Shown one piece after another: positions 105 to 39,550 of a stretch of 64,000 bases of DNA. Made by a program: the position numbers and the translations under genes. How positions within the stretch are numbered: position 1 is the first letter of the stretch; each line of letters starts with the position of its first letter. The notes beneath the pieces were generated by a model. That model saw nothing but the letters and a program-made list of their open reading frames with translations. It did no database searches and was not told the origin of the DNA. The stretch comes from Orbicella franksi (lineage: Eukaryota), in NCBI GenBank assembly GCA_964199315.1, contig OZ116702.1, positions 25,916,001-25,980,000 of the forward strand. The letters run 5' to 3'.

Positions 105-267
105 CTTTAATTTCCTCGAAGTTCGTCAACCAAATCGGGCCATGGCTGAGTAACGTCGTATGCACAGGCGCACTGTAGGGGAGGGCTCTGCGATGACGAC
201 TCCTCGGAAGCAGGTCGCAATTTTTAAAGCACTCAGAATTTGGATCTGAAGAATTGCAAACGATGGC
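105..267 (-). CDS. ZP-C terminal exon with consensus furin cleavage site (RHRR, 187-198) and external hydrophobic patch
   Basis: Translates [58 protein letters not shown] boundaries, 163 nt, phase 0-1. Confidence 0.85.
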
Positions 268-39200: not shown

Positions 39201-39550
39201 CTAGCCTCGCTGCCATACAAAGGCCAGGTCACTGAGCAGACAACTGTAAAATGGTCTATTGAAATTTTGCTCAATGTTCTTGCAAGGATGAATACGTTTT
39301 AAATATGTAAGCAAATTTAGTATGTAGAGGATTCCTAGAGATCATCGAGCATTTCCTCTTAGTATGCATTTGATACAGATTTCCAAGTGCATGGCGTGGC
39401 TCATAAATTCATGAAATTAGAACTAACCTGCGCATGTTTTTCCATCACCCTCATAACCTCTGATGCATCTACACACATACAACCCAACCGTGTTAGAACA
39501 AAGGGCATTCACGTGGCAATTAGCCTCTCCTGTGGTACACTCGTCAACAT
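105..39550 (-). CDS. Giant multi-exon extracellular protein gene: ~77 cbEGF - VWA - 2 EGF - ZP module - furin site - EHP (partial; 5' exons not found, 3' end runs off the left edge)
   Basis: Consecutive GT-AG exons on the minus strand with compatible phases (EGF and VWA exons phase 1-1; ZP exons 1-2, 2-2, 2-0, 0-1). Repeated D(I/V/F)DEC...C.N..GS(Y/F).C.C..G(F/Y).G.G..C consensus, a VWA fold and a ZP cysteine pattern. Confidence 0.9.
634..754 (-). CDS. ZP-C exon
   Basis: Translates (G)[40 protein letters not shown], the classic GCP.D...RF....FKF.....VYIHC ZP-C motif. 121 nt, phase 2-0. Confidence 0.9.
1722..2027 (-). CDS. ZP linker / ZP-C exon
   Basis: Translates (R)[21 protein letters not shown]...[66 protein letters not shown](G). 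306 nt, phase 2-2. Confidence 0.9.
2141..2420 (-). CDS. ZP-N exon
   Basis: Translates [73 protein letters not shown]...DVDIPF, the typical ZP-N L.DP.C / L..CGT / Y.N pattern. 280 nt, phase 1-2. Confidence 0.9.
2977..3012. repeat. (AAAC)n microsatellite (others at ~20326-20375 and ~28724-28752)
   Basis: Directly visible. Confidence 0.9.
3062..3184 (-). CDS. cbEGF exon between VWA and ZP
   Basis: [41 protein letters not shown]; 123 nt, AG/GT flanks. Confidence 0.85.
3531..3641 (-). CDS. Short EGF exon between VWA and ZP
   Basis: [37 protein letters not shown]; 111 nt, six Cys, AG/GT flanks. Confidence 0.8.
4728..5276 (-). CDS. von Willebrand factor A domain exon (degenerate MIDAS)
   Basis: 549 nt phase 1-1 exon inside ORF 4534-5331. 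Translates [14 protein letters not shown]...RYSLITCG...[11 protein letters not shown]...[13 protein letters not shown]...ILVLPIAFG...DELTRLA, a VWA beta/alpha pattern. Confidence 0.88.
5633..6150 (-). CDS. cbEGF exons 1-2 (counted from the VWA side)
   Basis: Exons 5633-5755 and 6028-6150, 123 nt each, DIDECS...[20 protein letters not shown]. Confidence 0.88.
6570..6706. mobile_element. Short MITE-like inverted repeat
   Basis: gaacct...acaacggc ... gccgttgtagagaggtttgcctgta. Confidence 0.5.
6971..12722 (-). CDS. cbEGF exon block: five copies of a three-exon cassette
   Basis: 123-nt exons starting at 6971, 7190, 7587, 8125, 8363, 8961, 9493, 9744, 10227, 10612, 10847, 11170, 11904 and 12600, plus a pseudo-exon at 11665. 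Introns are visibly homologous between cassettes. Confidence 0.88.
11665..11789 (-). pseudogene. Decayed EGF pseudo-exon (DFDEC type)
   Basis: Reads [17 protein letters not shown]. It has a Cys2-to-Tyr change, a TGA at 11737-11739 and a 1-nt deletion (125 nt long). Confidence 0.85.
12817..14758 (-). CDS. cbEGF exon block (5 exons)
   Basis: Exons 12817-12945 (129 nt), 13669-13791, 13980-14102, 14320-14442 and 14636-14758. Confidence 0.85.
13125..13376. mobile_element. Intronic MITE
   Basis: Termini agggtgcgtttc ... gaaacgcaccct, plus internal inverted aagatcacttggatca / tgatccaagtgatctt. Confidence 0.7.
15041..18363 (-). CDS. cbEGF exon block: four copies of the three-exon cassette
   Basis: Exons starting at 15041 (126 nt), 15277, 15697, 16363, 16601, 16820, 17121, 17318, 17567, 17814, 18031 and 18241 (the last has a CG acceptor). 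Confidence 0.85.
18698..25968 (-). CDS. cbEGF exon block (23 intact exons plus one remnant)
   Basis: 123-nt exons starting at 18698, 19044, 19272, 19736, 19938, 20454, 20666, 21357, 21595, 21807, 22018, 22262, 22720, 22961, 23193, 23716, 24104, 24319, 24558, 24783, 25031, 25333 and 25846. Confidence 0.87.
20848..21125 (+). mobile_element. tRNA-derived SINE
   Basis: Head with a Pol III A-box-like TAGCCGAGTGG and a degenerate B-box (gggctcaagtacc), a non-tRNA body and an AT-rich tail. It does not fold as a full cloverleaf. Confidence 0.7.
21164..21240 (-). pseudogene. Truncated EGF exon remnant
   Basis: Only the 3' half of an EGF exon is recognisable (plus strand accgctacaaattgcaccatttctagtgaatc...tgcaagtacagccataagaaccg). 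The DxDEC half is missing. It lies next to a SINE. Confidence 0.7.
26381..29128 (-). CDS. cbEGF exon block of a second sequence family (alternating KNG.PC-type and short-loop-type exons)
   Basis: Exons starting at 26381, 26768, 27183, 27709 and 28806 (123 nt); 26969, 27389, 27912 and 29009 (120 nt); and 28346 (117 nt). Confidence 0.87.
29369..29490 (-). pseudogene. Decayed EGF pseudo-exon (paralog of exon 28346)
   Basis: Reads [26 protein letters not shown], then a 1-nt frameshift. TAG at 29474-29476 and lost cysteines. Confidence 0.82.
29887..39550 (-). CDS. N-terminal divergent cbEGF exons with long introns (11 exons)
   Basis: Exons 29887-30009 (CG acceptor), 30762-30884, 31681-31806, 34191-34313, 34884-35006, 35646-35768, 36639-36761, 37079-37201, 37906-38028, 38812-38937 and 39428-39550. 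Confidence 0.85.
31990..32420. mobile_element. Intronic MITE with multiple TCGCGAA motifs
   Basis: tacctta.aacatga.attttcgcgac.cgtt ... aacgtgtcgcgaaaatttcatgtaata...aggta inverted termini. Confidence 0.6.
34525..34805. repeat. Purine-rich (GAAAG/GGAAA-type) low-complexity tract
   Basis: About 280 bp almost exclusively A/G on the + strand. Confidence 0.9.
36197..36477 (+). mobile_element. 5'-truncated copy of the same L1/Tx1 family in an intron of the EGF gene
   Basis: Aligns with LINE ~49897-50172 (ggaaagtgctatg...cttctcgcaatc) and ends in a 13-nt A-run. Confidence 0.88.
37255..37530. repeat. (TCAG)n degenerate tetranucleotide microsatellite
   Basis: Directly visible gtcagtcagtcag arrays. 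Confidence 0.9.
39020..39260. mobile_element. Foldback MITE with perfect 98-bp inverted arms
   Basis: 39020-39117 is the exact reverse complement of 39163-39260, with a 45-bp spacer. Confidence 0.88.

Follow-up and report, generated by a model that had tools for sequence, protein, structure and literature searches.

Work on apical extracellular matrices has concentrated on flies and worms, with very little on cnidarians. In Drosophila, Dumpy is a gigantic protein of EGF modules with a single ZP domain and a transmembrane (TM) anchor near the C-terminus; its EGFs are calcium-binding, its repeats evolve by unequal crossing-over, its symmetric exons are alternatively spliced, and it anchors the epidermis to the cuticle under tension (PMC2930355). 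FBN-1 of C. elegans is composed of a signal peptide (SP), calcium-binding (cb) and non-cb EGFs, S/T-rich regions, a ZP domain, a furin site and a TM segment (PMC4395870). Nematode ZP proteins can also carry EGF, VWF or mucin domains, and VWA-ZP and mucin-ZP combinations are known (PMC11304992). As for corals, the 'EGF repeat proteins' of Acropora tenuis (Cooke et al. 2020) carry cbEGFs in large tandem arrays and lack TB domains; seven of these models lie within 200 kb, show strong selective sweeps, and have been discussed for a role in symbiosis (PMC7695477). Skeletal proteomes of Acropora include ZP, EGF and VWA proteins that have furin sites and TM anchors (PMC4890752), and EGF+ZP proteins are known from mollusc shells (PMC9290575).

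The locus described here was studied in a window of 64,000 nt from the genome of Orbicella franksi. A sequence-only reading of the same stretch, made without knowledge of its origin, had proposed that a probable cnidarian encodes there a single giant protein with 77 EGFs, a VWA domain, two EGFs, a ZP module, an RHRR site and an EHP. The source is indeed a stony coral, the sequence is contained in RNA runs that carry coral labels, orthologues are present in Porites lutea and Pocillopora meandrina, and each of the elements listed was found, all on the minus strand (Table 1); the outermost positions that had been given, 105 and 39550, are exact exon ends.

Table 1. Features of the locus, in positions of the 64-kb window.
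Feature	Position	Strand	Basis or remark
Window part of 36,513-nt intron (39551-76063)	39551..64000		Holds plus-strand GPCR genes and LINE copies
77 single-EGF exons, W1-W77	5633..39550	-	Pattern scan and splice-site model, RNA joints, contig L032
W1, most upstream EGF exon in the window	39428..39550	-	Internal exon: phase-1 acceptor, no ATG
VWA exon, single, phase 1-1	4728..5276	-	Pfam VWA E 4.7e-16
Post-VWA EGF exon, not calcium-binding (starts GSDEC..)	3531..3641	-	Pfam EGF_3/EGF; in L032
Post-VWA calcium-binding EGF exon	3062..3184	-	Pfam EGF_CA E 6.1e-11; in L032
39-nt micro-exon, 13-residue linker ETEET.GATGGWK	2522..2560	-	Seen only in spliced contig L032
ZP-N exon, four conserved Cys	2141..2420	-	Pfam ZP-N E 1.7e-13; in L032
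Inter-domain linker and first part of ZP-C	1722..2027	-	Pfam ZP-C E 6.8e-17
Second ZP-C exon	634..754	-	Spliced in L032; aligns to uromodulin
ZP-C end (Cys-rich), RSRHRR furin consensus, EHP-like hydrophobic patch	105..267	-	Sequence reading; spliced in L032

A scan of the window for the six-cysteine EGF pattern gave 79 real matches on the minus strand and none on the plus strand; two of the EGF exons lie past the array, between VWA and ZP. All the EGF exons are of phase 1-1, with the pattern ag/AT ATT GAT GAA TGC ... TGT xxx G/gt, and 66 of the 78 that were scored are exactly 123 nt long. The calcium-binding consensus is present in 75 of the 77 array EGFs (W1-W77), and across the whole gene the introns have a median length of 266 nt. 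When joined, the window exons form one open frame of 3,727 codons, in line with the size of about 3700 aa previously estimated, and a first model that included the TM exon had 3,759 aa and a single terminal stop. The acidic character ascribed to the array is borne out by its composition (D+E 19.8%, K+R 4.2%). A frame-broken EGF-like remnant is found at 29345-29473.

As had been supposed, the array and the VWA/ZP exons belong to one gene and not to separate ones. The 26-mer predicted for the EGF76/VWA junction was found as an exact match in the JGI contigs, in the spliced contig Ga0099803_1288353 (L032), which aligns colinearly to 13 blocks of the genome (97.6-100% identity). Its order is EGF74-76 (exons 7092-6971, 6150-6028 and 5755-5633), VWA, EGF, EGF, micro-exon, ZP-N, three ZP-C exons, TM, stop and 3'UTR. 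Because L032 joins EGF74-76 to VWA, ZP and TM, the array and the VWA/ZP tail are one mRNA: the end of the array, VWA, two EGFs, linker, ZP module, RSRHRR, hydrophobic patch, TM segment and tail are all on the same spliced molecule. In its 733-aa ORF, Pfam lists EGF (EGF_CA, E 9.3e-39), VWA (E 9.1e-16) and ZP-C (E 1.1e-33) only; the D8C domain is absent from it, as are TB (8-Cys) and hybrid domains. Dumpy_DPY modules gave no Pfam match on the exons or on this ORF, and the EGF exons abut without inserts. TB-like domains were also absent among the ORFs of at least 60 aa in introns longer than 1.2 kb, a search that exons shorter than 60 aa could escape.

At the other end of the window, the RNA joints 39428/38937, 38812/38028, 37906/37700 and 37079/36761 are those predicted for the exon ends of W1-W6, and splicing of the six leading EGF exons of the window follows the prediction exactly. 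An RNA contig of 867 nt (run X25) covers W2 and W1 and then proceeds with 461 nt found nowhere in 36600-42599, so that W1 is joined to upstream sequence lying outside 36.6-42.6 kb. Fourteen RNA runs contain 31-46% of the words of positions 1-6000 of the window, where the exon share is 32%; raw-read depth on the exons is below 1x in two polyA libraries. Beyond W1, RNA depth is nil at 39600-39799 and at 40800-40999, and at most 1.7, in one run, at 40400-40799.

The VWA exon is single-copy in the genome, with orthologues in many coral assemblies (99-46% identity). The AlphaFold2 model of the domain (pLDDT 86.4) found its best Foldseek matches in VWF A3 (TM-score 0.81), mussel PTMP1 and VWF A1. 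The MIDAS motif D-x-S-x-S is absent, the position reading G-A-L-S-N, and is likewise absent in 16 of the 16 aligned VWA homologues (orthologues and VWA-array paralogues). The domain had been placed at the tip of the rod; it lies instead at the base, two EGFs and the 13-residue linker away from ZP-N. The linker is encoded by the micro-exon, which sits between the second post-VWA EGF and ZP-N with the genomic flanks cag/ and /gttagc; all the exons that had been named are there, but this one had been omitted.

The ZP-N exon aligns to betaglycan ZP-N and to uromodulin. In the following exon, a ten-residue strand aligns with GMFTVRMALF of uromodulin, which is also a phmmer match of that exon in the PDB. 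The alignment of the whole ZP module with uromodulin is full-length (E 1.2e-22), with all the conserved Cys aligned, and that with GP2 has an E of 8.5e-17; ZP-N and ZP-C share the conserved cysteine pattern of the uromodulin type. The ZP-C exon is single-copy, and its nearest paralogue in the genome has 36% identity. On the transcript, RSRHRR is followed by a hydrophobic patch (ten residues of it were read out), then by the TM helix and the stop, and this succession of a consensus furin site after ZP-C, a hydrophobic patch and a membrane anchor is again that of a uromodulin-type protein. From its position and pattern, the patch is predicted to function as an EHP. The TM segment, a short tail of 33 residues and the stop are found outside the window, 383-522 bases ahead of its first position, and the 3'UTR is also just outside. 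Both termini had been reported as absent, which is true of the window itself, but the C-terminus does exist a few hundred bases away.

The exon order is conserved among other corals. At one orthologous locus (L019), three EGFs, VWA, EGF, EGF, ZP-N, three ZP-C exons and TM are found on one strand within 11 kb, and RNRR, the patch ..DLVSQGPILM.. and the TM segment are retained; at another (L016), the order EGFs, VWA, EGF, EGF is kept. It should be noted that EGF_CA candidates number at least 2,610 genome-wide, in several large clusters.

The array had been taken to start at 39550. W1, however, is spliced to at least 461 nt of further sequence, and 116 more EGF exons of phase 1-1 lie upstream on the same strand, at 76-138.5 kb, the last of them with a phase-1 donor. 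In another coral (locus L030), the orthologue of W1 follows that of the upstream exon U113 after about 470 bp, and the orthologues of U112/U113, W1, W2, W3, W4 ... W14 are contiguous. These data strongly suggest that the 77 EGFs of the window continue from the 116 upstream exons across an intron of 36.5 kb. The intron contains rhodopsin-type GPCR genes (Pfam 7tm_1, E 4.4e-49), RVT_1, and a tandem duplication of 11.4 kb (40660-52011 / 52331-63676, 97.8% identity); we strongly infer that the GPCR genes and the LINEs entered it in this lineage.

The opposite-strand genes in the gap would also be accounted for if the locus comprised several transcription units, the 116-EGF array being a separate gene, split off by the 36.5-kb insertion, and/or the lectin exon described below belonging to a small secreted protein of its own. 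The exact 26-mer of the U113/W1 junction, which had no match in the JGI contigs, agrees with this, and no read or contig shown spans the junction. Yet the acceptor of W1 is of phase 1, a start codon is missing from this exon, and the RNA contig runs 461 nt beyond it; a scan of the intron revealed neither a minus-strand EGF exon nor a credible signal-peptide exon; the upstream array lacks its own VWA or ZP tail; and in L030 the two arrays are one.

The same question arises at the N-terminus. A candidate N-terminal exon upstream of the array encodes a C-type lectin domain (CTLD; Lectin_C, E 2.1e-20), and a candidate signal-peptide exon and a candidate second exon agree with the N-terminal sequences of proteins annotated in Porites and Pocillopora. 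The exons for the SP, the CTLD and the STP-rich stretch lie in phase ahead of the array and are syntenic in Porites, the order CTLD-then-array also being found in P. lutea. The protein is accordingly predicted to start with a signal peptide, a short exon, a C-type lectin and a Ser/Thr-rich, mucin-like region of ~400 residues. In P. lutea, NCBI annotates the CTLD as a separate protein of 183 aa (P0190), whose model ends in a 12-residue terminal exon of its own located 560 nt beyond the CTLD exon, and the Pocillopora protein P0191 (164 aa) is likewise annotated as a short SP+CTLD protein. These annotations speak for separate units, and the lectin may be encoded by a gene of its own or represent a short isoform; against this, the first array exon (ENVTG..) is of phase 1 and without ATG both here and in Porites, and the CTLD is the sole in-phase exon upstream of it. 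On balance, we regard a locus of several transcription units as rather unlikely.

Our provisional model of the full gene has 204 exons, 27,282 nt of coding sequence over 150 kb and a single stop; its phases are partly consistent by construction, the exons having been chosen in phase. The product would have about 9,093 aa, 961 kDa before glycosylation, a pI of 4.05, 13% Cys, 10.3% D, 7.5% E and 194 EGF domains; this length is a maximum, because symmetric exons may be skipped in real mRNAs. The calcium-binding consensus is found in 161 of the 192 single-EGF exons, about 31 EGFs being of other types, and 106 EGFs carry one of the N-x-S/T sequons, 138 of which are present in the model. Provisionally, the window can be considered to hold the 3' part (about 40%) of one single-copy stony-coral gene of ~150 kb on the minus strand.

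The array might alternatively be a decaying one, consisting of exon-like remnants without a working product. Splice sites are damaged in three exons (W45, at about 18363, with the acceptor CG instead of AG; U111603; and the U94719 donor), two exons depend on GC donors, and the frame-broken remnant mentioned above might be read in the same way. Nevertheless, 193 of the 195 EGF exons are open with usable splice sites, the frame is unbroken over 27 kb of coding sequence, and the exons share 60-85% amino-acid identity with those of another coral, just one recent duplicate within the array retaining intron similarity. The gene is spliced, polyadenylation-competent and present in many RNA libraries, and contig L032 contradicts a non-functional array, which we judge extremely improbable.

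Taken as one single-copy coral gene, the locus likely encodes a furin-released ZP filament with long Ca-stiffened rods, of the Dumpy/FBN-1 class. If the protein behaves as uromodulin-type ZP modules and tandem cbEGF domains are known to do, its precursor would be a type I membrane protein, from which a furin-type convertase, cutting at RSRHRR, would remove the anchor together with the EHP; head-to-tail polymerization of the ZP modules would then yield a filament. Every subunit would bear a Ca2+-stiffened, N-glycosylated EGF rod of roughly half a micrometre, an estimate which assumes about 2.9 nm per cbEGF. At its base, the metal-independent, VWF-A3-like VWA could bind collagen or a neighbouring filament, and its far end would probably carry the mucin segment and the lectin. 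By analogy with Drosophila Dumpy and C. elegans FBN-1, the most likely role would be that of a load-bearing apical extracellular matrix or epithelial tether, for which the surface glycocalyx/mucus layer and the zone where the calicoblastic epithelium is fixed to the skeleton are candidate sites in the coral.

The same gene product could act mainly in the skeletal organic matrix, as a biomineralization scaffold whose furin-shed acidic rods are occluded in aragonite. Its low pI, its content of D and E and its 161 cbEGFs would suit such a function. Calcium sites of cbEGFs, on the other hand, are structural rather than mineral-nucleating, as is established for fibrillin. ZP, EGF and VWA proteins do occur in Acropora skeletal proteomes (PMC4890752), and EGF+ZP proteins in mollusc shells (PMC9290575), but the skeletal ZP protein so far known from corals is small, consisting of SP+ZP+TM, and belongs to a different gene, because the ZP-C found here has no close paralogue (36% or less). 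A principal role in the skeleton is therefore something we hold to be unlikely.

A function as a mucosal decoy or capture filament, similar to uromodulin, GP2 and DMBT1, in which glycans and the probable distal lectin bind microbes or symbionts, is suggested by the closeness of the ZP module to uromodulin and GP2, by the abundance of sequons, and by the probable N-terminal CTLD and mucin-like region. The sweeps at the cbEGF-repeat models of A. tenuis (PMC7695477) point in the same direction, as a lead only in a genome with many cbEGF clusters. The link to the CTLD is, however, tentative, and a decoy does not need a rod of ~190 EGFs, which resembles more the tension-bearing Dumpy and FBN-1; we find this function doubtful. 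A bolder picture, to which we attach only low confidence, would unite several of these elements: a membrane-born protein of ~1 MDa forming a uromodulin-type ZP filament with half-micrometre EGF rods tipped by mucin and C-type lectin, its uninterrupted EGF array being, to the best of our knowledge, the longest, and acting as a surface brush or as a tether between calicoblastic cells and skeleton, with the swept 'EGF repeat' models of Acropora being fragments of the same or similar genes.

If a matrix tether of the Dumpy/FBN-1 class is indeed encoded, such tethers would either predate the cnidarian-bilaterian split or have been assembled convergently. At the surface layer of corals and at their cell-skeleton interface, mucus, microbes and symbionts come together with calcification, and a single-copy, conserved and expressed gene offers a concrete molecular candidate for the apical matrix there. 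The ~200 symmetric phase-1 exons of one module each, together with the 36.5-kb intron and its captured GPCR cluster, make it a clean case of array growth and of tolerance to exon loss. Coral annotations are likely to fragment or mis-split genes of this kind, as the 183-aa CTLD protein of Porites and the seven A. tenuis models suggest, and such splitting affects selection scans and proteome searches.

The gene can be compared with several known families. Fibrillins and LTBPs likewise have long tandem arrays of cbEGFs, which bear the Asn/Asp hydroxylation-type consensus and form Ca-stiffened extended rods; they possess TB/hybrid domains, whereas the coral array is uninterrupted and its assembly would run via the ZP module. 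In uromodulin and GP2, too, EGFs precede the ZP module, and a basic cleavage site, a hydrophobic patch and a membrane anchor come after it, but uromodulin is GPI-anchored and contains 3-4 EGFs and a D8C domain, compared with 194 EGFs, a VWA domain, a TM helix and no D8C in the 733-aa C-terminal ORF. The coral skeletal ZP and mollusc EGF-ZP shell proteins have in common the ZP domain, an RxK/RR site and a TM segment, with release into the mineralizing matrix (PMC4890752, PMC9290575), but are small (SP+ZP+TM, or 1-2 EGFs and ZP), and the ZP-C found here has no paralogue above 36%. Atlas look-alikes included VWA+cuticlin-ZP, uromodulin-like and Dumpy-like clusters, with scores below 0.9 that make them a lead only.

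The analogy with Dumpy drawn by the sequence-only reading is apt: both combine a giant EGF array with one C-terminal ZP domain and a TM anchor. The body of Dumpy is made of EGF-DPY-EGF triads, unlike the coral exons, each of which encodes one EGF abutting the next without DPY, and Dumpy has no VWA. The coral transcript resembles FBN-1 in its cb and non-cb EGFs, ZP domain, furin site and TM segment and in the absence of TB domains, and the coral gene may share its N-terminal elements as well. FBN-1, an embryonic sheath or precuticle ZP protein, has 2,781 aa compared with the about 9,093 aa and 194 EGFs of the coral model, and has not been described with a VWA between array and ZP, nor with an N-terminal C-type lectin; orthology of the two and their independent assembly by domain shuffling are equally possible. 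The opinion that the domain order corresponds to no named protein thus stands for the exact order and size, which are undescribed in the literature searched, but not for the class: a protein with an EGF array and ZP domain, a furin site and a TM anchor, working in the apical matrix, is of a kind already known in bilaterians, where Dumpy and FBN-1 have been characterized.

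On the minus strand of the window (G000:C5:25916001-25980000, where G000 is the genome and C5 the contig), the six-cysteine EGF pattern gave 79 real matches between 3.0 and 39.6 kb, and none on the plus strand. Each match is a separate exon of identical anatomy, with an AG acceptor, two bases completing an Asp codon, D-x-D/N-E-C ... C-x, one G and a GT donor, and therefore every EGF exon is phase 1-1; the length is exactly 123 nt in 66 of the 78 exons scored. The sequence-only reading had claimed 77 EGF exons before the VWA domain and two after it, and this is exactly the count obtained from the pattern scan; the end coordinates it gave for the feature are exact exon ends. 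Between 6971 and 10734, a three-exon cassette (types DFDEC.., DVDEC..CRCKLGF.. and DIDEC..GFDGDG..) is repeated about 3.3 times with a period of ~1,374 nt. Recent duplicates are confined to the last cassettes (7.4-9.9 kb), the copies 7422-8569 and 8796-9955 being the only pair still 91% identical across introns, while elsewhere in the array the introns have diverged and the exons have been kept; over the longer stretch 6971-18363, a nine-fold cassette can be made out only in the form of older, diverged copies. An open stretch of 43 aa at 29345-29473 (minus strand), between the 12th and 13th exons of the array, looks like a frame-damaged EGF remnant; it gave no Pfam match and was left outside the model.

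The possibility that the array and the VWA/ZP exons belong to separate genes, raised in the same reading, is contradicted by a single transcript. The predicted EGF76-VWA junction, searched as an exact 26-mer in JGI contigs, matched Ga0099803_1288353 (4,476 nt), which aligns colinearly to the genome as 13 blocks of 97.6-100% identity and uses every predicted exon end. Its blocks run through EGF74 (7092-6971), EGF75, EGF76, VWA, both post-VWA EGFs, a micro-exon, ZP-N, three ZP-C exons and a terminal exon with ~2.2 kb of 3'UTR, and Pfam recognises EGF_CA, VWA and ZP-C in its 733-aa ORF. The micro-exon, of 39 nt (2560-2522) and situated between the post-VWA EGFs and ZP-N, had been missed in the sequence-only reading. 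The EGF-VWA-ZP junctions rest on this contig, the RNA reads having been aligned over 36600-42599.

The VWA and ZP-C exons are single-copy in the genome (the next best matches, 40% and 36% identical, lie in unrelated places), and many coral assemblies have a VWA-exon orthologue, 99-46% identical, whose exon ends match. One other coral assembly (locus L019) carries three EGF, VWA, EGF, EGF, ZP-N, three ZP-C and TM exons on one strand within 11 kb, and a Tara coral metagenome scaffold (L016) carries EGF exons, VWA, EGF and EGF. In addition, 14 RNA libraries from more than 10 studies, several of them labelled coral, contain 31-46% of the words sampled from window 1-6000, a stretch of which exons make up 32%. 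Copy number and conservation, the spliced transcript and the RNA libraries agree that the array end and the VWA/ZP tail are one gene. Homologue searches with the VWA, W1 (most upstream EGF exon of the window) and C-type lectin domain (CTLD) exons, and a phmmer search of a representative library, returned almost only single-exon genomic ORFs; no full-length annotated homologue or cDNA-derived ORF was among the length-filtered results, which is not evidence of absence.

Coordinates of the main features (window numbering unless otherwise stated)
Feature	Position	Strand	Remark
VWA exon	5276-4728	-	Pfam E 4.7e-16
ZP-N exon	2420-2141	-	Pfam E 1.7e-13
ZP-C exon	2027-1722	-	Pfam E 6.8e-17
Second ZP-C exon	754-634	-	read from DNA
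Third ZP-C exon, with RSRHRR and hydrophobic patch	267-105	-	read from DNA
Terminal exon: TM helix, short basic-start tail, stop codon	-383 to -522, just outside the window	-	sequence reading
RNA joints	39428/38937, 38812/38028, 37906/37700, 37079/36761	-	RNA alignment over 36600-42599
U113, last upstream EGF exon	76186-76064, window-equivalent	-	ends in phase-1 donor
331-aa GPCR ORFs	41781-42776, 53462-54457	+	7tm_1 E 4.4e-49
Truncated GPCR copies	51206, 62872	+	same cluster
EGF_CA clusters, examples	C6:27.06-27.71 Mb, C4:8.2-8.9 Mb, C8:1.5-3.8 Mb, C2:37.26-37.34 Mb, C9:24.03-24.09 Mb		genome contigs

When joined, the exons form a single open frame with one terminal stop. From end to end, the ZP module taken from the transcript aligns with human uromodulin (E 1.2e-22) and with GP2 (E 8.5e-17), all the conserved cysteines being in register and one ZP-C strand pairing with uromodulin GMFTVRMALF; by itself, ZP-N is nearest to betaglycan. 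The exon with the third part of ZP-C and the external hydrophobic patch (EHP) found no match among PDB sequences because it is too short alone. The L019 orthologue has an RNRR site, retains the hydrophobic patch and TM helix, and ends in ..DV. The VWA domain had no PDB match by sequence at 1e-3. Its fold was predicted with confidence (pLDDT 86.4, pTM 0.87), and a fold search placed it closest to VWF A3, mussel byssus PTMP1, VWF A1, integrin I domains and collagen VI. The metal-binding MIDAS motif (D-x-S-x-S), replaced here by G-A-L-S-N, is absent in all orthologues, and because of this and of its fold neighbours the modelled domain resembles the metal-independent, matrix-binding A domains. A Notch-like receptor was also considered and rejected: Pfam found only EGF-type, VWA and ZP families in the 733-aa C-terminal ORF, and the cytoplasmic tail is 33 residues long.

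At its other end, the array does not start at 39550, as W1 opens with a phase-1 acceptor and has no start codon, and an RNA contig extends past it. RNA alignment over 36600-42599 gave four joints with CT..AC ends exactly on predicted exon ends, and one contig of 867 nt spans W2 and W1 and carries a further 461 nt found nowhere in that interval; its match runs two bases beyond the W1 edge, which fits an upstream neighbouring exon ending in ..AG. RNA depth is nil at 39600-39799 and 40800-40999, and at most 1.7, from a single run, at 40400-40799. From 39.5 kb up to the next coding exon on the minus strand there is no credible signal-peptide exon, and the candidates for a first exon just upstream of 39550 or in the 36.5 kb gap are only antisense-of-GPCR artefacts, so that the array does not start there.

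The flanking genome contains 116 further predicted EGF exons on the same strand, all phase 1-1, at window-equivalent 76-138.5 kb. A two-exon cassette present there at 79407/78958 and 76493/76186 recurs as W1/W2, its second exon being of the type DR(N/D)EC..GEAGNCQ. The sole database homologue of the W1 exon led to another coral locus (L030) in which orthologues of a U112-type exon, U113 (71%), W1 (85%), W2 (78%), W3 (80%), W4 and W9-W14 follow one another on one strand, with U113 and W1 only ~470 bp apart; the 36,513-nt gap is therefore an intron that took up foreign DNA. An upstream array that is a tandem paralogue with its own tail was rejected, the VWA and ZP-C exons being single-copy. The exact U113-W1 junction 26-mer was not found in JGI contigs, a result that is uninformative either way. 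We regard a single gene across the gap as very probable.

The giant intron contains plus-strand rhodopsin-type GPCR genes and LINEs, and within it lies an 11.4 kb tandem duplication (97.8% identity), further copies of whose unit, 93-94% identical, are found at 64-72 kb. The GPCR genes are intronless and form a cluster, on the strand opposite to the giant gene, that occupies window 40660-63676 and continues to ~75.8 kb outside it, interleaved with LINE ORF1/RT copies. Since the orthologous intron in the other coral is so short, the cluster is, on this genomic comparison, a putative lineage-specific insertion. In all four RNA runs, three short intronic stretches (36800-36999, 39000-39399 and 40000-40199) reach word depths in the thousands and have many loose ends; they are probably pieces of strongly transcribed interspersed repeats that do not belong to the mRNA of the giant gene.

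The exon upstream of the first EGF exon encodes ~400 residues rich in Ser/Thr/Pro joined to an EGF, and begins in phase 1 at a conserved acceptor, ..atag/AAAATGTAACAGG (ENVTG..). Three kilobases further upstream is a phase 1-1 CTLD exon (Lectin_C E 2.1e-20), preceded first by a short exon and then by a signal-peptide exon of classic type (donor CAG/gtaaga), the last two matching the N-termini of annotated proteins of Porites lutea (183 aa) and Pocillopora meandrina (164 aa). In P. lutea, the orthologue of the ENVTG.. exon lies on the same strand 2.4 kb after the CTLD exon, and the first EGF exons come next. The Porites annotation closes the lectin gene with its own 12-residue terminal exon, and the lectin may consequently have a gene of its own or represent a short isoform. 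Between the CTLD and the array we found no other signal-peptide exon, and we infer that the N-terminus consists of a signal peptide, a short exon, the CTLD and the Ser/Thr/Pro-rich stretch. At the Porites locus (OY283126.1:2091981-2119838), the 183-aa CTLD model is named 'snaclec coagulation factor IX-binding protein subunit A-like', and in the public annotation the EGF exons lying 2.4 kb beyond it are covered by no gene model. Annotation of the giant gene may be missing or fragmented at this locus. In O. franksi, going upstream from the putative signal-peptide exon, the first gene on the minus strand is that of a T-box transcription factor (Pfam T-box E 2.8e-30) at window-equivalent 171-175 kb (L027:228-641); this gene is predicted to bound the 5' end of the giant gene.

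The provisional full-length model comprises 204 predicted exons over ~150 kb, with a coding sequence of 27,282 nt and one stop. The protein of 9,093 aa (961 kDa unmodified, pI 4.05, 13% Cys) has 194 EGF domains and 138 N-x-S/T sequons. The full calcium-binding consensus is present in 161 of the 192 single-EGF exons; about two dozen EGFs of the non-calcium type are scattered through the upstream half alone, and O-glucose and O-fucose consensus sites are essentially absent. Splice sites are damaged in three exons and two have GC donors; as all exons are symmetric, the frame is kept if these are skipped. We found no further domain-sized exon within the larger introns.

While domain set, order, transcript and conservation are observed, the following mechanism draws on what is established for ZP modules of the uromodulin type and cbEGF tandems of the fibrillin type. 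The product would be made as a type I precursor. A convertase cut at RSRHRR would free the EHP and the anchor, and the ZP modules would assemble into filaments by polymerisation. The N-terminal arm would stand out as a glycosylated rod stiffened by calcium, with an estimated length, all EGFs included, of ~0.5 micrometre at ~2.9 nm per cbEGF. The VWA domain, which had been proposed to tip or hinge the rod, would from the domain order lie at its base, adjoining the filament.

At least 55 VWA-domain exons, 25-40% identical to the VWA of the giant gene and also without MIDAS, lie on one strand within 75 kb at G000:C3:33002858-33078251 (L011-L015), in what looks like another giant gene with a single module per exon; the VWA-exon search also matched database proteins of 1,916-6,024 aa with 7-15 VWA stretches. 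Genome-wide, there are at least 2,610 EGF_CA candidates and several very large clusters, some with near-identical 54-aa ORFs repeated over hundreds of kb, and cbEGF arrays seem to be widespread in this coral genome. At 1359-1468, between ZP-C exons, an intron of the giant gene contains an element of ~110 bp with more than 40 copies on all chromosomes (75-95% identity), which looks like a SINE or MITE.

Our literature search found no paper on a cnidarian protein with this EGF array-VWA-EGF-EGF-ZP architecture. The 'ZP domain-containing protein' of coral skeleton is small and consists of SP+ZP+TM (PMC4890752, PMC9290575). Cooke et al. 2020 (PMC7695477) described a run of seven neighbouring 'EGF repeat protein' models, with no known function, inside 200 kb of the Acropora tenuis genome, two of them under very strong sweeps; this description fits a fragmented annotation of a gene like the present one. 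Protein-atlas look-alikes (VWA+cuticlin ZP, uromodulin-like and Dumpy-like clusters) scored below 0.9 and are leads only. Nematode ZP proteins join ZP with EGF, VWF or mucin domains (PMC11304992). The coral protein falls outside Dumpy proper, the fibrillins and uromodulin proper because, unlike these, it has no DPY modules, TB domains or D8C, respectively, whereas it fits a looser FBN-1-like description. Its nearest functional analogues would be Dumpy and FBN-1, which anchor the epidermis to the apical matrix and bear tension (PMC2930355, PMC4395870).
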